From positions 248,001 through 312,000 of the forward strand of contig JALMLS010000277.1 in assembly GCA_038496445.1 (NCBI GenBank): DNA of 64,000 bases. The letters are read 5' to 3'. The notes beneath the pieces are model-generated. The model was not told the origin of the DNA. It worked only from the letters and a program-made list of their open reading frames with translations, and searched no databases. The translations under genes were made by a program, and so were the position numbers. The first letter of the stretch is position 1; every line of letters starts with the position of its first letter. Source of the stretch: Trichosphaerium sp. ATCC 40318 (Eukaryota; Protista; Tubulinea). Below, piece after piece: positions 8,870 through 45,100 of this stretch.

Positions 8870-9733
8870 GGTACTTTTAACTTAGAGATTTTTATTTTTT
8901 TGTTTTTAATTTCTTTTTTTGAATTCCAGTTTCCCCCACTAGCCCTGGCTTTAATAATAAGCAAACGTGATATGATTATGCACGCAACCCCATATCTCCC
9001 ACTCTCATAATCCTATACTACTATGATTATTGTTTTGCTTTGTTATTTGATGAACTTATTGATGCCTTCTTGCTTTGTGTGTGGTTTTTTGAACACACTT
9101 TGTTTCGATAATTTTGGGATTTCAACCTTTATAAAATTCTCAGAATTTATTGTTTCCTCTTATCTTCTTCTTTGTTTATTTGTTGTACTTTGATTACTAC
9201 TATTTCTATTCTTATTCTTAAACCATTTTTGAGTACTTTCATTCGTTCTTGCATGCTCTCGCACCAAGATGAATAAAAAAGGTTGACAAAAATGGAAAAA
9301 GCGCCATTCACGGATGACAGATAGGTATTTTGGCAGTTTTCTTTTTGAATATTTGTGCTTATATATACTGCTACTAACACTGTAGATACTAACCATAACG
9401 GGTACATGAGAATCCACTGCTACTAACCCAAACAAAAAAAAAACCTAAAGAACACATCATTGTTGTTAACTTGTAATTCGCTGCTTGTGTCAAAACAATA
9501 TATCAGTACGGTACAACCACCTGGACGGTACAACCTAAACCCTGGGTTTTTTTAAGAGGTTTTACTTTTTCTTGGTTTTCTGTCTTTGTATTTTTTTGAT
9601 GTTGTACTCGGTTCATGCACCGTTTTGTGTAATAAAATAAAATAAAAACGCTTGAAACGCAAGGACCGCCACCGCATTTAGTTTTGCTCAATATTAGAAT
9701 TTCCGGTTTATTACCAGCACTTGTGATGCAATA

Positions 9734-12562
9734 ATGTCCAGGGTAGGCGTTTATGCCATTTTTTAAGTTATGGGTTTCTTATATTCGATGCTAATCTATT
9801 CAACTAGTCGACATTTGGTGGTTCTAGCCGTAACAGTGCTTATGATTCTTCTTCGTGGACAGTATCATCTATGTCTGATTCAAGTTCAAGCTACGCGTCT
9901 TTGTCGCCTAGAGGACCTGCAGGAGAAGAAACAAGCGGTTCTGCTATTGTCCGGCAGTTGTACAAACTAAATGTAAACTCTTCTCCAGCGCAAACAGCGC
10001 CATCAGTAGTACGTATTACTCGAATTCGCTAGTAAGTTCCAAAACTGTAGTTAATCTCATTTTGCCTGAAAAGGTATGGAAAGCGGTCGCAGATCTTATT
10101 GTCACGTATGTACTTATACTCGTATACTATAGCCCATTTTAGGCTAGTTGTCGCTTCATAAACCTTTACTAACTAAAACGAACAGAGGGGACGTAGACTG
10201 GGATGAACAGTTCGGAAACGAAGCTGAAGGAAGCTACATGGTGCCTTTATCAGAGATTGTCGGTTGGTACCTTACTAATTCGTTATTCGACCACAAAACA
10301 GGTATCTACGCCTTTTAAATGATTCCTAAAACGTTACAGGCCACGCAAACTTCTCAGTACTGGACAGGTACGTTAAAAAGGTTTTAGTTGATTCCCACAT
10401 CTAAGCCGCATAAACAAATCACTTATAACTTTGTACCATGTTTAGATTCGCACTCATAAATAAGATAAATATTTTATACGAAGCAAGCGACATGAATGGT
10501 CACCCTTGGTTCCATAAGGTATTCCTCGTTAACACTCCTATCTTTGTTTGAAAGCTCAAACAAAAAATTTCCAATTTGGTTTTTTTTTTCCTTATTTGCT
10601 AATTTGTACTTTGAAAATAGACTGCGTTACAACTTGGTGATAATGCAGTGCCATTCTTGCAACAAATGAAAGAAGCTAAAGTAGATATCTTACGCTTGGA
10701 TGCGCAGGTGAGTCTTTTTTCTTTCTCTTGTTAAAGCGCCTTCGTGACTATGCTCGCTTGCCTATTAACTATGTCTCAAAAGGCATCAACATTGTATTCT
10801 AAAATAAAAAGTGAGGAAGTTCGTGAGATGCTATTTCAAGAGGCATTGAATAGATTAGGTACAAACTTCTTTACGGAGTACAGCTTTTCATGACTTTTGA
10901 AAAAAAAAAAAGCCTTCTTTCCTTTACCATAAACAGTTGGTAAAATAACCGAACATAACAAACATTTTTATTATGTATAATTTATATCATGTACTTATAG
11001 TCTTTCTTTAGTTGTACCAAACGTTTCTTCGATAGAGACGAGCTTAGACCAAGCTAACATGCATTTAACAAAACTAACTGCTGAATTTTCACAATTTAAA
11101 GAACAAACACGAAAAGCACAGGAGGCACTTACACTGCCTTCTAAATACTCTAAACAACCTGTAAAATATACTAGTAGAGTATCTAGACATTCTACACCAC
11201 CTAAAACACCACCAGAGAATAGCTTTAGCAATAGAAGCAAAGAACTTGAAAAACTTAGAAAGCGAAATAGCAGCTTGAAGGATCAAGTCAAAAACTTAAC
11301 ACAAGCACTCCAGACACTACAAGTTACTTCCAGCAGCCAAAGTGACATACCCAGTAACACTATTGGGAACCATGCGCATGATTCTACATCAACAAAGAAT
11401 AGTGTTGTTCCAGCACTAGGGCCGATTAGTTCTCCAAGTGTACCTTCTTTGGTTTAAGTTTGTGCGAACCTGATTTTCTCATTAGCTTCCTTGGACAGTA
11501 GAAGTCGAAGGTGACTTGTATGATGTACATACACCATCAAGTAAGTCTTGGAAGAAGGATAAGCTCAAAGGAAAAGATCCTCAAGCTCAGATAAAGTGGT
11601 ACAAAGGTACGAAGAGGAAATACATCTCCGATTCTATGTACTAATTTTTTTTGTTTGTAGCTCAATTAAAAAAAGCTAATGAAGAGAAACAATCCATAAA
11701 TGTAAAATACGAAGAAGCAATGGATGAGTTGAGCGAGTTACAAACAAAAAAATCGAAAGTGTTAGTCATACGTTTTGTTGAGAATACACTCAATATGAAT
11801 ATATATAATTCTGCTATAAAGAATGGTTGGAATGGTAAAGACCAAGTTACAATTCAAGTAGAAATAGAGAAAGATGTTTTAGTAACATCTTTAAATGCTG
11901 ATGTACCAGCACTTGTTACTGGTAAGCACTTTCCTCAAGGAACAAGTATCAATATTCTCAACAAAGTACGATCGAAAGATTTCGAACAGTTCTTTCAGTT
12001 TTTTCTTACTTTTTTCTTAAGGGTGGTATCATAGGCAGGGGTGGACATGGTGGGTTCAAAGGGAAGGGTGGAAACGGTAAGCTATATGCATATATACATA
12101 CATTATGTAACTCATTAATTAAGGTGGTGATGCTATACGATTAGAGTATCCAGCAAAAATTGTTAACATGGGCGTCATAGCTGGTACGTGTTTTTTTATT
12201 CTTGAACACTAGCACATCTGACAGTATCCAAGCTGGTGGCGGTGGTGGGGCAGGATACACTGGAAAGTATGCTGAATATGGTGGGGGTGGTGGAGCACCG
12301 TATGGTATATCCTCTGCGTTATTAAGCAGGTACACTTTATCTTTATTTTCTTGTGCTTAATCATTGTATTAGGGGTTCTCTGTCAAAGGGCGGTGTTGGA
12401 GCAAACGGACAGAGTGTTGGCGGTGATTGGGGCAAAGAAGGCGATAGTTTTGGCGGCGCTAATGGCGGTTCTCCTGGAAGAGCGATAGTAAAATCGTCCA
12501 ATAATTTAGAGCTTATTCGTTCCCCTGATACACATATTTATGGCGACATAGCAGACACATAA
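9734..12562 (+). CDS. Coiled-coil protein with C-terminal phage gp38/tail-adhesin-like glycine-rich domain
   Basis: About 15 exons join in frame with canonical splice sites. C-terminus: VTSLNADVPALVTGKHFPQGTSINILNK|GGIIGRGGHGGFKGKGGNG|GDAIRLEYPAKIVNMGVIA|AGGGGGAGYTGKYAEYGGGGGAPYG...GGDWGKEG...GGSPGRAIV...IYGDIADT*. Start codon is tentative. Confidence 0.75.
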
Positions 12563-12944
12563 ACTGTTAATATTGTAGAGTAAAAAACCGCTAAACGATG
12601 TAAACTGATATAAGTTTAATGGACATAGACCGTCCTCAAGTCACCGTAATTCTCTTTTTAGCTGTGACAAGAGTCAGAATGTTTGTGGAACTTCTTGTTT
12701 TCACAACGAAATACAATAGGACTCTAACGATGAAGCTCCACTTCGTTGGTTTGTTGTACATGTCAACTACATATCGATTTTTTACGTGTCTTGTACTTGT
12801 CGCTCCTTTGACACGTCAAAAACTTGTAACCTTGCAACAGACGCTCGTGGATAGTAAATGATCCTGACCACGAAGCTGCGACTTTTTTTGTTAAGTTACG
12901 GCTGTCTCGCTTCTTTAAGGTGACAGTATTCACGTTTCACTACC

Positions 12945-15798
12945 ATGAGAGGCTTTGCGGTGCTCGCTATACTTGCAATAATTGCATGCGCCAACGCTGC
13001 GCCATCAGACTATATTTCTAAGAGTAACGCCAAAACCATCATCGATGCGGTCAACGAACAAAGAGATCAAAGTGGTAGTGCCTACAACGCCAATATCGGT
13101 GATACGCATTACGCAGTGAAAACTCACTCATATCTTGGCCAAGCGGTCCCTGACAAACAAAAACTTTGTCCTTTTGCCTTGGAGGGTACGTATACACTAT
13201 TAGATTCATACGCAAACGTATTTTGCCCAGTCATCAATTTATTTGCCAATTTGCGAAAACTTTCGCTCACCTCTGAGAACAGGTTTAAAAGGAGATATTG
13301 AATCTATTTACCACTCAGTCCAAGTAATTAAAGCGCTTGACTGTAAAGTCAAAGATGCACCAGCAAATGTAGCTAAGGTTGTGTCCGAAGCTGTTCAAGG
13401 AGAGTACGTAGCGTTTTTAACGCTACTTCGCTAATATTGCTTCCAGATCCCTCCTCGACTACTACCACGCTGTGTCAACTGTATACACCCTTGGAAAACA
13501 ACTTAAACTCAAGAAAAGAGATGTTCTCCCTGTCGCTTCCAACATTATGGTACAATTTTAGCATCGCTAAAAAACGCTCAAAAAAGCAAATTCAACTACA
13601 ACACCTTGCAAAAAGACGTGTTTTGACTGTGATTGACTGATGATGTCACAGGACCTCATGGATGGTGATCAAGGCACTTTCAAAAGAACACCACAACAAG
13701 ATGAGGGATCTGTATATTACGCAGGTAATTTTTGAGGCCAAACAAAGAGAATTAATTAATAAAAAACGTTTCCTGCTAGTTTTTGATAAAATATTTATTT
13801 TCTATTTAGGTCTTGCATACACAGCACTCTCTTTGATGTACAAGGATCTCGAACAAGATGAGAAAGACCAAGGTGCGTTTTTAGCAACGTGTCATTGGCT
13901 TTGGACGCCAAGACAGTGGCATTGTTAGTTTGGTCTTAAAAAGTCGTTAACATGTTTTGTTTTTAGTTTCTGGCGTTTTCGATCAAATCGATACACTATT
14001 GAGCTTAGCTGAAGAAGACAGCACCGATTCCGCTGCTAGCTTCTCTCACCAAGATAACACTGTGTCATCTCTTAAAACCACAAGCACTTTATTGCAAGGT
14101 GTTATGGATATCTCAAAAGCCCTCAGCAACGACGCTCCAATCTCTGAGGTGAGTATTATTTTATTAATCATATTTTTTCCGTGATTTAATCAACTGTCTA
14201 AATGTTTTTGTAGGATCTCATTGTTCAATTGGCACAATACTTCATTAACAACAAATACACTACCTCTATTTCTGAGGCTGCTGCTCTCACCAGTGGTTTG
14301 AAAAACTGTAACGGTAAACAACTCGCCAAACCTGTTGTTTTGAGCGTTGCCCGAGGAACTATCCACGTTTCATCAAAGGTATGTCCATATATAATTTAGT
14401 TTTATTAATAACGCTTTCCTAGGGTGAAGAAGGTTACGTACAAGTACGTGCCACTGATGTATTTGGTTCCCCAGTACCAGCCAAGGTATACCTTGTCAGC
14501 GCATACTCTGTACAAGACAAGTCCCAAAAACGCATCTTGAGCAACCAAGAAGTACAACCAGTTAAGGGTCAAAAAGGTCTTTTCTCTTTGAACTTCCTTG
14601 CTGCTAAGCCTGATCCTGGTGCTTATGTTATGGAATTCCGTGTTACACCAAAGAAGGTTCGTTTACATGGTTATATCCATTTTCGCTAATGTTGGTTAAA
14701 GGACTCCAAATGGCAAGCCGTTGAAGTTGAGAGAACTATTAAAGTTCAAACACAAATTACTGTTGATAAACCTACAATTTTGGTCACTGATACACCTTCC
14801 CCTACTGCTGGTGGTCGTACATTCGAGTATGTTATTAATTCTTGTTGTTTACCATTTGAGACGTGAATATTGATGTTTGTTTGATAGGCTCACAAAGGGC
14901 AAAACTTTGAAGGATATTGTTTCTGTATCATCAAACCAATTCTTGCACCTTCGTTTTAAAATCAGCAACAAGGCTTCTGGTCGTTCTATTCTCGTACACC
15001 AAGCATTTGTCAAGCTCACTAACGTAAAAACACAAGAGGTGCGTATTGCAGGAGATTTTTTTCGTAGCTTTTTTTTTTTTTTGGATTATGCTAATCTGTT
15101 TGGTTAGGAACAATACTTTGTTGCACGTGCTAGCAAGTCCAAACAATATGATGTCAAAATCGACATGGCCAAGCACGCCTCTAAATTCAACAACCGCGAC
15201 GGAAAGGTACGCTAGAAACTAATTATACTTTGGAATCTTGATTTTACTATTTCATTTCTAATATCTTTTTTAGTACGAAATGACTTTGATTGTCGGTGAC
15301 TCCTACATTGACAACTCCTTCCAATGGAAGGTCGCCACTGCTTCACTCTCCTTTGATGGGGAAGCCTCTGATGTCCCAAAAGCAACCGTAAAGGCTGTTC
15401 GCCCAGAGATTAAACATAAATTCGCTGTACCAGAAAAGAGAGCACCACGTTACCTCTCTGATGCCTTTACAGTCGCTGTATTGGTTCAACTCGCATTTTT
15501 ACTTGTTGGAGTACGTCTCAGAGCATTTTTTTTTGTTCACTTGTTGTCAAGAATTAATGTTTATTTTTAGTTCTTGGTTGTTGGTATTAACTTGCGTAAC
15601 TTCCCTCTCGGTTTGAACACCATTTTCGCTCTTGGCTTCCATGGATGTTTGGCAGCTTGGCTCGCTCTCTATGCCGCATACTGGCTTTACATTGACTTTT
15701 TCGAAGCTACACGTTACATGCTTGTTCTAGCGCCACTCACAGTTTTCTTTGGCCATAGAACACTCCGCTACATTGCTTCGCAAACAAAGAGAGATTAG
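12945..15798 (+). CDS. RPN2: Oligosaccharyltransferase subunit ribophorin II (Swp1)
   Basis: Signal peptide MRGFAVLAILAIIACANA; VHQAFVKL; LIVGDSYIDNSFQWKVA; RPEIKHKFAVPEKRAP; three C-terminal TM segments including FHGCLAAWLALYAAYW. Confidence 0.92.
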
Positions 15799-42195: not shown

Positions 42196-45100
42196 ATGAC
42201 ACGCCTCATACTCACCGTTGTCGCCCTTTTAATAGCTTGTGCGGCTGCACAGCAAACTCTTACTATGGATACATTAGTTGATGATTGGGAAGTTCTAACA
42301 GACAACCACGAAGCGAATGCTACCTTCGACGTTGCTGAGGCAATATCCACTGGTGTTAGAGGTTACGGTAGCATGCGTACAATAACCGCTACGATTATCA
42401 GTAACTTTTTCGACCGTAACATCCTCTGTAACTCGCTTGGGGGCACGTTTACAATGCGAATGAATCCAGGTGTTACTGGTTCTTGTGATATCGCTTACAC
42501 CGCGCCAATGCGACAACCTTTCAACCCTGCTATTAACTTGAACGCTCCTATTATTGGTGCCAGTACGTGACCTCTATCGTTGACTTTTGGCGTGTTAAGT
42601 CCCCCTTTTTTTAAAACACGTGATTTTTGGATCGCATCTCATTTTGTTTTAAATAGGTTGTTGGGCTGTACAGGTTATTAGCTCTACAGGCGCAAGTGTT
42701 GCTATTACTGCAAATACTCCATCTGGAAGTATCGTATCTACTTTACCTTCGTTTAGTGGTGAAAGCGAAATCCACTGTATCCCAATACCAAACCCGGGCG
42801 CTTTGTCTTCTGTGACTGGTTTACAAATTACTACAGCCGGACCATCCTCTACTACTATTGGAATTCAGGCCATTTGTCCTACTCCACCAGTGATATGTGA
42901 ACATACTGTCACTATTGATGGTTCTCCTGTACCAGACCAGGTTCCAACAGGTTCGATTGTTTTCTTCATCTCAACGAATAAGAAAAATCCTTAAATCGTA
43001 ATTCTTCTAACAGTTGTTCTGTAGGTACTATTCTTTCAGTATCAGTAACGTGCCTCAATTTTGCGTCTGTACCTTCTGATGACGAAACGGTCAGCATGAA
43101 CTTTGATATTCCTCAAAATATTGGCACTGTATTGCCTGATACAAGAGACTGTAGTCTTGAGGTAAGTTGTAGTATTTCGTTTCTTTTTCCTTAAACCAAC
43201 TTTCTTCGCCATCATGTGACTTATAAATTTTGCATCTAGGCTGTTTTCAATCCAACTAACGGCCTTTCTGTATCAAATGTTCCAGTTGCTGATGGTGCCT
43301 CGTTCACATGTGGCTTTGACTTCATGGCAACAGGTGCCTCCAATTTTTCCTCAAAGTTCAACTTGTCCTTCTGACACTACTTTAAGGCGGTGGCTCAACA
43401 TCTTTATTTGCAGCTGTCACAAACTCAGCTGATGGCGTCGTAAGCTACTCTGGAAACGCCCCACGGCACGTACTCTATTCTGCTTCTTTTTTTTTTTTGT
43501 TGAAGCATTAAAATTAAACACAACTCCTTACAAGAAACTTTTAGTGGATTATGTGATGTAGCTCAAGTATTCAACCTTGTTGTTACAGGTGATGTAATAC
43601 CAGTTACACCAACAACCGCTGCTCCGACGACTGCTCCTGTAGGATTCACACCACCTCCTGTAGGCTTCACACAACCACCAATGGATACTCCAACTGCCGC
43701 TCCTGTAGGCTTCACGCAACCTCCTCCAACTGCCGCTCCTGTAGGCTTCACACAACCTCCAACCGACACTCCAACCAACGCTCCAGTTGGCTTCACGCAA
43801 CCCCCAACCAACGCTCCAGTCGGCTTCACGCAACCCCCAACCAATGCTCCATTTGGCTTCACGCAACCCCCAACCAACGCTCCATTTGGCTTCACACAAC
43901 CCCCAACCAACGCTCCATTTGGTGTGACACCGCCAACAAACGCGCCAGTAGCTCCTCCAACAGCCCCTCCAACGAATGCTCCATTTGGTGTAATAACACC
44001 AACAAATGCACCATTTCCTCCTCCAACAGTTCCTCCAACGAATGCTCCATTTGGCACTGTAGCTCCAACAAATGCGCCATTCCCTCCACCAACAAACCCT
44101 CCAACAAACGCTCCATTTGGCACAGTAACACCAACAAATGCACCATTTCCTCCACCAACACAACCACCAACAAATGCTCCATTCGGCACAGTAACACCAA
44201 CAAATGCGCCATTCCCTCCACCAACAAACCCTCCAACAAACGCTCCATTTGCCACTGCAGCTCCAACGAATGCGCCAGTACCTCAATCGCCAACGAACGC
44301 TCCATTTCCACCTCCAACAAACCCTCCAACGAACGCTCCATTTGCCACTGCAGCTCCAACGAATGCGCCAGTACCTCAATCCCCAACAAACGCTCCATTC
44401 CCACCACCAACACAACCACCAACCAATGCCCCTGTACAAACCGCTGCTCCTACAAACGCGCCAGTACCTCAATCCCCAACAAACGCTCCATTCCCTCCAC
44501 CAACACAACCACCAACCAATGCTCCTGTGCAAACCGCTGCTCCTACAAACTCTCCTACAAATGCTCCTGTACAAACCACTGCGCCTACAACCGCACTTTG
44601 TGATCCTTTCACTACTGCTGGAGGTGTCATACCAACAGGTCAATTCTCTCTTATTGATATTATTGGTCTACCTTTAGCACCACCAGAGTATTGTATGCGA
44701 TTTGATGGATTCACCGGATCTACTGTACGATTTTCAATTCACGTTTTTTGCTACAATATCTTTAAGTCGTTTCCAAAAAAATTATCTTGAGTTGTTTGTT
44801 TATGTTTGTTATAGGTTCCAGTGACATTATCTTGCTTGAGTAATATGATCTTATACATCAATGCTGCTGAGCGTACTATGAGACTTAGTGGTGAACTTTT
44901 CGGTGCTGAAGACCTTGGTACTACTCGTCAAAACCCAGAATTCGCAGCTATCCACATTATTTTCTCGTACGTTGTTTCTTTTTTCATCTAGTATTCTTCT
45001 TTACATCGTAGACGTTTTGTGCTTACCTGGTTTTTTAAATAGGGATATTGTAATTATCAGTACACCAACTGGATTCGAAATTAACACCAGCACTATCAGT

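Follow-up and report, generated by a model that had tools for sequence, protein, structure and literature searches.

We asked whether a gene at positions 9734-12562 (+ strand) of a 64,000-nucleotide stretch of Trichosphaerium sp. ATCC 40318 DNA (the window) ends in a domain related to the gp38 adhesins of T-even phages, as an initial annotation had proposed, and what such a domain might do in a eukaryote. The whole gene was modelled as 15 exons with 14 GT-AG introns of 38-153 nt, encoding 625 codons followed by TAA. The 625-aa product was collinear over its full length with P0002, the EukProt Trinity transcript TRINITY_DN860_c0_g1 with a complete, intron-free ORF (171/513 residues identical). 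Exons 1-4 (9734-9742, 9808-10008, 10074-10105 and 10186-10301) and 5-8 (10340-10367, 10446-10518, 10621-10707 and 10783-10858) encode a Ser-rich N-terminus and then an all-helical domain of ~140 aa. Exons 9 and 10 (11012-11439 and 11486-11606) and the first part of exon 11 (11661-11965) encode heptad (coiled-coil-like) segments and Ser/Pro/Thr-rich linkers (together 11012-11755). The least certain joins of the model are the exon 5/6 border (10367/10446) and 11439/11486.

The glycine-rich C-terminal part is encoded by 5 exons (11661-12562), which joined in frame both on reading the sequence and by script. Exon 11 starts within the heptad/linker region and then, from 11756 to 11965, encodes the opening 70 aa of the GP38-type domain, with beta-helix rungs, a GWNG motif and INILNK at the end. 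Behind intron 11 (11966-12021, 56 nt), exon 12 (12022-12076) carries the glycine-rich motifs GRGGHGG and GKGGNG; behind intron 12 (12077-12123, 47 nt), exon 13 (12124-12183) encodes a beta-helix rung (GDAIRLEYPAKIVNMGVIA); and behind intron 13 (12184-12232, 49 nt), exon 14 (12233-12329) carries AGGGGGAG and YGGGGGAPYG and then a loop that differs between the three eukaryotes compared here. Intron 14 (12330-12372, 43 nt) precedes exon 15 (12373-12562), which supplies KGGVGANGQ, GGDWG and GGANGGSPG, the closing beta-helix rung and the stop codon, so that the joined frame ends in IYGDIADT and TAA (12560-12562). All four introns (43-56 nt) begin with GT and end with AG, their phases are compatible, and the four junctions lie in gap-free, collinear alignment with P0002 and with P0001, an intron-free JGI contig of 1136 bp (sample 3300030740) with an A-run at its end. 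Support for these joins comes from their canonical splice sites, the continuous frame and the collinear cDNA-type homologues of other eukaryotes. Every peptide stretch that had been quoted initially after removal of four introns was recovered in this frame; the exon extent needed a small correction, as exon 14 (the fourth of the five) reaches 12329 and GISSALLSR therefore sits between 'APYG' and 'GSLSKGG'. Neither tRNA or Rfam features nor a second GP38 domain copy or phage genes were found in the window.

Does the sequence place this C-terminus in the GP38 family, as its motif order had suggested? The Pfam family GP38 (PF05268, phage tail fibre adhesin Gp38 domain) has a gathering cut-off of 25 bits, and both the Pfam and the fold tests were done with P0001 and P0002, whose domains are ~60% and 55% identical to that of the window. 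The excised domains scored 44.7 bits (P0001:120-320, E 1.8e-11) and 41.2 bits (P0002:370-565), and a precomputed PF05268 annotation was present on both proteins; Pfam gave no GP38 match on full-length P0001 or P0002, the match appearing only when the domain was cut out. In the tests alongside these, PHROG tail-fibre families matched at E 1e-16 to 1e-20. Of the window's own sequence, the exon 14 piece alone (31 aa) matched Pfam GP38 at E 0.17, and exon 15 matched the C-terminal end of the phrog_11439 profile (tail fibre protein; E 6.4e-5). When scored with an HMM built from 40 phage/bacterial GP38 domains, the joined domain of 204 aa reached 118 bits, compared with 8.1 bits for the best of 1000 composition-matched shuffles. 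It has seven glycine runs (residues 493-596; the core is 37% Gly), and the order of its glycine-rich motifs matches that of 28 phage/bacterial domains in a column-by-column alignment. The non-glycine 70 aa (11756-11965) matched gp43 of Sphaerotilus phage vB_SnaP-R1 by tblastn in 2.3 Gb (35% identity, E 4e-4) and phrog_10745 (E 4.7e-6), and the top atlas clusters for this segment all carried PF05268. A search of 1.84 billion proteins with the same segment returned 22 matches, two of them of eukaryote type. On the sequence evidence, the match of the C-terminal domain is beyond what chance or glycine bias would give.

The predicted structure agrees with this assignment. Searching the PDB by sequence alone with P0002:370-565 gave no match, so the link to solved gp38 is visible only via Pfam and fold comparison. 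The AlphaFold model of P0001:120-320 reached a pLDDT of 88.1 and a pTM of 0.86, with low confidence in the variable loop of exon 14, and it predicts a short beta-helix with two loop excursions that build a three-layer polyglycine-II sandwich. Foldseek with this model returned gp38 of phages PP01 (9v85) and S16 (6f45) at E 4e-9 to 5e-10; only those gp38 chains fell below 1e-8, and the next match among the best 50 had an E of 0.65. VIA-align, run exhaustively over 48,161 chains, aligned 189/201 residues of the model to residues 42-249 of 6f45_D (Z 22.4, rmsd 2.2 Å) and gave Z 20.5 for 9v85_C, with the next family at Z 8.5. In addition, the neighbours of the domain in BFVD and ESM-Atlas were all phage or bacterial GP38 proteins. 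The polyglycine-II sandwich that had been expected from the motifs is therefore what the homologue's model shows when it is compared with solved gp38 adhesins.

We then asked how the domain came to be in a eukaryote. Homologue searches with P0002 (whole or residues 365-565), in a collection that excludes the window's protein, recovered no proteins other than P0001, P0002 and phage/bacterial ones; the 101-aa exon as query gave no match within the length limits, and a pattern scan of metagenome contigs and 185,579 bacterial/archaeal genomes found no close relatives of the eukaryotic domain. In a phylogeny of the kind the initial annotation had called for, the three eukaryotic sequences formed a single clade (support 100/100) on a long stem amid phage/bacterial sequences, which fits a single old transfer. 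The GP38 relatives occur in a phage structural module (with an SU10-type capsid), directly 3' of a tail-fibre gene, or next to bacterial chromosomal genes. This tree has no root, and support for the sister group of the eukaryotic clade is weak (86/87); the claim of horizontal capture stands as regards a phage or bacterial origin, and the donor may have been a bacterium or prophage rather than a free phage. As to a route through giant viruses, no match to a giant virus in BFVD reached significance (probability 0.12 for the Mimivirus row). Taken together, we consider it very likely that the domain is a GP38 domain that was transferred horizontally into a eukaryote. Since the module was fused to a eukaryotic helical stalk protein and was kept in at least two other eukaryotes, it is one of the rare receptor-binding modules of phages that a eukaryote has adopted; we found no report of a eukaryotic GP38 domain in the searchable literature.

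What does the rest of the protein indicate about its use? The N-terminal domain, which is common to our model and P0002, was described initially as unknown, and we could assign it to no known family: Pfam gave no match for the exon pieces or for P0002:1-200, atlas neighbours were weakly ankyrin-like (0.87), and a single-sequence AlphaFold model was all helix at low confidence (pLDDT 48.9). The stalk turned out to be only partly as proposed. A crude heptad scan did detect heptads, and they lie in three short segments (residues 211-249, 276-319 and 383-428) joined by Ser/Pro-rich linkers rather than in one long coiled coil; Pfam matches in this region were to coiled-coil families and all sub-threshold. 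P0001 and P0002 likewise have heptad segments immediately upstream of the GP38-type domain, and from these segments the protein is probably oligomeric. As had been noted, the protein lacks both a signal peptide and membrane segments (the N-terminus is hydrophilic and the top 19-residue hydropathy is 0.98), and hence the protein is probably cytoplasmic.

The explanation that we favour, and that we hold to be probable as a whole, is as follows. A GP38 domain entered a eukaryotic lineage once, horizontally, from a phage or a bacterium, and then gained spliceosomal introns and became the C-terminal head of a eukaryotic protein. The phage N-terminal module that plugs gp38 onto the tip of the gp37 fibre was lost, with the eukaryotic stalk as its substitute. 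The family membership and horizontal entry of the domain, the gain of introns, the fusion to the helical N-terminal and heptad parts and the loss of the gp37-attachment module are each shown or strongly supported. The resulting protein, probably oligomeric and cytoplasmic, might carry a set of two or three adhesin heads. Their ligand would lie on a surface and, as with phages, would most plausibly belong to the bacterial envelope, and the N-terminal domain might couple the bound cargo to host machinery. We put forward a bacterial ligand only tentatively. The proposed role as a sensor of bacterial surfaces would be compatible with the absence of a signal peptide or membrane segment; a cytoplasmic protein would, however, seldom come into contact with an intact bacterial surface except where bacteria leave or damage the phagosome. 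A more specific version, which we regard as unlikely, is an amoeban cell-autonomous pattern-recognition receptor, an oligomeric coiled-coil adaptor in the cytoplasm whose gp38 heads would grip the outer membrane of bacteria in the cytosol or in damaged phagosomes and whose N-terminal domain would recruit autophagy, ubiquitin or cytoskeletal machinery.

Alternatively, the domesticated fold could have nothing to do with bacteria and could bind an endogenous protein or glycan, or cap a coiled-coil adaptor of the cytoskeleton or of trafficking. We consider this possible, though less likely than not. A protein with neither signal peptide nor membrane segment does not normally face prey surfaces, and fusion to a conserved helical N-terminal domain also suits such a role. 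Moreover, no GP38 family members are shorter than the eukaryotic ones, which have most of the variable loops trimmed, and the remaining loops are largely conserved in the three eukaryotes rather than hypervariable. On the other hand, the three sequences do differ in one loop (residues about 553-566), no result points to an endogenous ligand, and the characterised members of the fold are all receptor-binding tips for bacterial envelopes (PMC6851490).

Could the gene in this genome be an unexpressed or decaying relic, with functional relatives in other eukaryotes? The terminal branch of the window's sequence is about three times as long (0.83) as that of P0001 or P0002 (0.28 each), which could reflect relaxed constraint, and none of 20 sequencing runs with the species label contained the stretch (a comparison of four of them with it gave zero contigs), although the run type is a guess and the runs are perhaps not RNA of this strain. 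Nevertheless, nothing breaks the 625-codon frame over its 15 exons and 14 canonical introns, and all glycine motifs and beta-helix rungs are retained. In addition, the three eukaryotic domains are identical in 94 of about 200 columns, and dN/dS was ~0.17 (YN00), a rough value because dS is saturated (2.17). A relic is thus improbable.

We also asked whether the C-terminus could instead be an ancient glycine-rich domain of eukaryotes, similar in type to that of ALK/LTK, or convergent low-complexity sequence, with no kinship to gp38. ALK/LTK receptor kinases also contain polyglycine-II helices (bioRxiv 10.1101/2023.11.25.568672), and glycine-rich sequences can produce spurious matches. However, Pfam gave only GP38 for the P0001 and P0002 domains at E up to 10, the non-glycine 70 aa matched GP38 proteins unaided, and the shuffled sequences stayed far below the score of the domain. 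The structural comparison with gp38 and ALK/LTK that had been suggested initially placed gp38 at the top, and no ALK/LTK chain was among the best 50 of Foldseek or VIA-align. As ALK/LTK is absent from both the sequence and the fold searches, these searches leave the kinship with gp38 in place, and we regard an ALK/LTK-type or low-complexity origin as very improbable. Contamination or mis-assembly of phage or bacterial DNA in a eukaryotic contig, which might be suspected as every relative apart from the three eukaryote-type sequences comes from phages or bacteria, has a negligible probability, since (as the initial annotation had argued from the introns) the domain is split by four spliceosomal-type introns, is in frame with the 10 eukaryotic exons upstream of it, lies in a stretch whose GC content is uniform with its flanks and occurs in the same fusion in the EukProt transcript.

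A GP38 domain kept by a eukaryote matters in several respects. No natural binders of bacterial surfaces are more specific than the receptor-binding proteins of phages, and gp38 has one of the very few known polyglycine-II sandwich folds. If a eukaryote keeps such a domain, cut down to a minimum and joined to a stalk and adaptor domain of its own, transfer from phages or bacteria can supply recognition modules and not enzymes alone, and the protein becomes a candidate for intracellular recognition of bacteria by a phagocytic protist. The compact version of the fold (~200 residues) could also be used in structural work and binder engineering.

Finally, we compared the eukaryotic protein with known systems. 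It resembles S16 gp38 (PDB 6F45 chain D) and PP01 gp38 (PDB 9V85) in PF05268, in predicted fold and in the order of the glycine motifs. T-even gp38 adhesins (S16/T2/T6 class) attach with their distal loops to an outer-membrane protein or LPS of the bacterium. In S16 and PP01 gp38 an N-terminal alpha-helical domain docks on the gp37 trimer, whereas this domain is absent from the eukaryotic protein: Gp38_N (PF21721, with a conserved Trp) had no match in P0001 or P0002, the structural alignment begins at S16 residue 42, and heptad segments precede the eukaryotic domain instead. The phage proteins are encoded beside a tail-fibre gene, whereas the eukaryotic domain, with shorter loops, is covalently fused to a eukaryotic protein and occupies the last 5 of the 15 exons of a eukaryotic gene rather than part of a tail-fibre module as in T-even phages. 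GP38-domain proteins of other phages and bacteria, stand-alone or fused, include gp43 of Sphaerotilus phage vB_SnaP-R1 (MN844877.1) and P0003, a protein on a phage-like metagenomic contig; their domains are collinear with the eukaryotic one from end to end (32-38% identity), start with a non-glycine 70 aa containing GWNG and likewise lie at the C-terminal end of the polypeptide. Such proteins, from tail modules or bacterial chromosomes, differ from the eukaryotic one in that they are intron-free, have longer variable loops and are often tandem duplicates or joined to PKD, TIG or Gp10_C domains. The ALK/LTK glycine-rich domain (PF12810) likewise places polyglycine-II helices in a eukaryotic protein but has no sequence or fold match to the domain; ALK/LTK receptors lie outside the cell, are restricted to animals and combine it with a TNF-like domain. 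The layout that we propose would resemble that of coiled-coil receptors for cargo in cell-autonomous defence and in the handling of prey. Other genes of prokaryote or phage origin that became established in eukaryotes, such as transferred phage-type lysozymes, also gained introns and were kept under selection. Their products, however, are secreted, stand-alone proteins or enzymes, while the GP38 module was grafted onto a multi-domain protein that is probably cytoplasmic.

We read the window from 9500 to 13500 and joined candidate exons by script, which resolved the C-terminal part of the gene into five forward-strand exons (11661-11965, 12022-12076, 12124-12183, 12233-12329 and 12373-12562). 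The four introns between them (56, 47, 49 and 43 nt) all start with GTA, end with AG and have compatible phases. The joined frame leads from a heptad segment into the start of the domain (VLVIRFVENT) and through the glycine motifs; it closes with THIYGDIADT, and TAA at 12560-12562 is the stop codon. This in-frame join reproduced in full the glycine-rich peptide quoted in the initial annotation, with all motifs present, but exon 12233-12329 is longer and adds nine residues between 'APYG' and 'GSLSKGG'. Upstream, ten more exons with canonical sites share one common frame, giving a gene model of 15 exons at 9734-12562 that encodes 625 aa, in which 10367/10446 and 11439/11486 are the weakest joins. 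GC varies little over the window (about 0.34-0.45), and no second copy of the GP38-type domain was present within the 64 kb. GC reaches its maximum (0.45) and GC skew its largest magnitude (-0.2 to -0.3) at 43549-44790, where a 369-aa ORF (43681-44790, +) carries a Pro/Thr-rich, mucin-like tandem repeat of roughly 25 units on the motif PTNAP; long antisense ORFs within this stretch look like by-products of the repeat. Just 3' of the gene, an ORF at 12945-13301 (+) has a signal-peptide-like start (MRGFAVLAILAIIACANA) and extends through introns; judged from its sequence, the product is probably a secreted protein, with no family assigned.

Sequence comparison gives the intron joins strong, indirect support. 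A HMMER search of 1.84 billion proteins (cluster representatives) with a 101-aa exon query yielded 22 matches at E <= 1e-3, of which only two were eukaryote-type: P0002, a complete ORF of 565 aa on a Trinity transcript in EukProt, and P0001, 320 aa, encoded on an intron-free 1136-bp JGI contig (L002) with a terminal A-run. Further homologue searches with P0002 added no eukaryote-type relatives. In a local MAFFT alignment, the spliced protein of the window was collinear with both over the four C-terminal junctions, without a gap at any of them. With P0002 it was collinear over the full length including the N-terminal domain (171/513 aligned residues identical), and its GP38-type domain was about 60% identical to that of P0001. 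On L002 (1-173), an upstream ORF (3-173) in another frame reads as heptad/coiled coil and overlaps the start of P0001, so a frameshift or faulty assembly has probably truncated P0001 at the N-terminus. All 20 public runs under the same species label were almost devoid of sequence words from the 3-kb stretch 9600-12700, which would be surprising if any run were genomic DNA or deep RNA-seq of this strain; for four of them, read mapping at 90% likeness to the gene stretch gave no match.

The 625-aa protein starts with a Ser-rich N-terminus (residues 1-70), followed by a predicted all-helical domain (about 70-207) that has no assigned family and is common to P0002. The coiled-coil stalk proposed initially corresponds to heptad patterns ahead of the domain, but these form three segments (211-249, 276-319 and 383-428) broken by Ser/Pro/Thr-rich linkers; the last passes without a break into the GP38 domain near residue 424. 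Since the maximal 19-residue hydropathy is 0.98 and the N-terminus is hydrophilic, the protein probably lacks a classical signal peptide or membrane segment, as had been suggested, and the same holds for the complete ORF of P0002.

We analysed the joined protein of the window with local scripts, while Pfam, AlphaFold and fold searches were done on P0001 and P0002. The non-glycine 70-aa part of the domain (11756-11965) matched phrog_10745 (E 4.7e-6), and the last exon matched a PHROG tail-fibre family (E 6.4e-5), at the C-terminal end of that family's profile. A tblastn search of 50,697 phage records with the 70-aa part had one match, Sphaerotilus phage vB_SnaP-R1 gp43 (E 4e-4 at 35% identity); its gene lies directly 3' of the tail-fibre gene, and the protein passes the Pfam GP38 cut-off of 25 bits with 25.9. 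All language-model neighbours of the 70-aa piece carried PF05268 (score 0.91, 190 shared features). When cut out, the P0001 and P0002 domains scored 44.7 and 41.2 bits against Pfam GP38 (profile positions 25-200 of 218), although the full-length proteins gave no GP38 match; their precomputed Pfam assignment is PF05268, and PHROG tail-fibre families matched these domains at E 1e-16 to 1e-20. Against a local HMM built from 40 phage/bacterial domain segments only, the window's joined domain scored 118 bits, in line with the gp38-type identity first proposed. As 1000 shuffles of its residues stayed at or below 8.1 bits, with a mean of -10.3 (sd 4.2), the match is not explained by glycine content.

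The AlphaFold2 model of P0001:120-320, computed with the 31-row domain alignment A1, had a mean pLDDT of 88.1 and a pTM of 0.86, with values below 75 only at residues about 130-160. In Foldseek against the PDB, all three significant matches were gp38 adhesins, including those of PP01 (9v85, E 4.8e-10, TM 0.75) and S16 (6f45_D, E 3.9e-9, TM 0.77), and the next match had E 0.65. VIA-align, run exhaustively over 48,161 chains, placed 6f45_D first (Z 22.4, rmsd 2.2 Å, 189/201 residues, chain residues 42-249) and then 9v85_C (Z 20.5), followed by generic beta-helices (Z <= 8.5). In BFVD and ESM-Atlas the neighbours were without exception GP38 proteins of phages (Uroviricota) or bacteria (TM up to 0.91), and no giant-virus protein matched significantly. 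An ALK/LTK-type eukaryotic glycine-rich domain, the alternative named in the initial annotation, is very unlikely, because Pfam found no family besides GP38 in the cut-out P0001 and P0002 domains at E up to 10, and ALK and LTK are absent from the 50 best chains of the Foldseek PDB and VIA-align lists for the P0001 model, where gp38 is the best match.

We then asked where the domain came from. In an unrooted maximum-likelihood tree of 43 domain segments, computed under LG+C20 from 246 columns, the three eukaryotic sequences are united in one clade (100/100) that lies among phage and bacterial sequences and has a stem about 2 substitutions per site long; within it the window pairs with P0001 (97/83), and the sister group, P0021 + P0014, has only 86/87. 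Among these phage and bacterial relatives, P0003 lies near an SU10-type capsid gene within a phage structural module, P0021 in a bacterial chromosomal neighbourhood adjoining BacA, and others, encoded on IMG/VR contigs, are long tail proteins of phages; the scanned metagenomes and prokaryotic genomes contained no close relative of the eukaryotic domain. The simplest reading is a single transfer into an ancestor of the three eukaryotes, after which the domain gained introns and was fused; this agrees with the capture first suggested, but the donor could be a phage, a prophage or a bacterium. As regards constraint, the three sequences share 94 invariant positions in about 200 domain columns, and YN00 gave dN 0.38 and dS 2.17 (saturated) for the window versus L002, a ratio of about 0.17. 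The terminal branch of the window is about 3x longer (0.83 versus 0.28 each for P0001 and P0002), which could reflect faster evolution, relaxed constraint or paralogy.

There is strong support that the C-terminus of the gene product is a GP38-type beta-helix/polyglycine-II head, that this head has lost the fibre-docking module, and that it is covalently attached to a eukaryotic protein also present in two other eukaryotes. The heptad segments may oligomerize and put several heads on display, and the heads would bind a surface ligand, by analogy with phages a bacterial outer-membrane protein or LPS. The protein would be cytoplasmic, its N-terminal domain coupling bound cargo to cellular machinery. 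A bacterial ligand is a tentative proposal. Similarly tentative is its main rival, a re-purposed binding or capping module for an endogenous ligand: in the eukaryotic versions the loops are shorter than anywhere else in the family and mostly conserved, which favours a fixed ligand over an arms race, although one loop (residues about 553-566) varies among the three sequences.

No account of a eukaryotic GP38 domain came up in full-text literature searches; a survey of polyproline-II bundle domains treats phage S16 gp38 and human ALK separately, and the word 'eukaryote' is absent from its text. S16 gp38 is built of three parts in order, a helical N-terminal domain for attachment, a beta-helix of five rings and a polyglycine-II sandwich of ten helices, the distal loops of which presumably bind the receptor (PMC6851490). 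The eukaryotic domain resembles the last two parts only and lacks the helical attachment domain. Its sequence and predicted fold place it in Pfam GP38, but the proposed T-even likeness does not extend to a T-even-type adhesin in the strict sense, because the Gp38_N docking domain and a tail-fibre gene context around the gene were both tested and found absent. Many phage/bacterial relatives (P0003, P0005, P0008, P0014, P0020, P0006, P0007 and P0004) have two or three complete tandem GP38 domains, some with additional PKD, TIG, Gp10_C or TcdB mid/N-terminal domains (the TcdB-type domain in P0004, a bacterial relative used as an alignment row only), whereas the eukaryotic proteins carry a single minimal GP38 copy.
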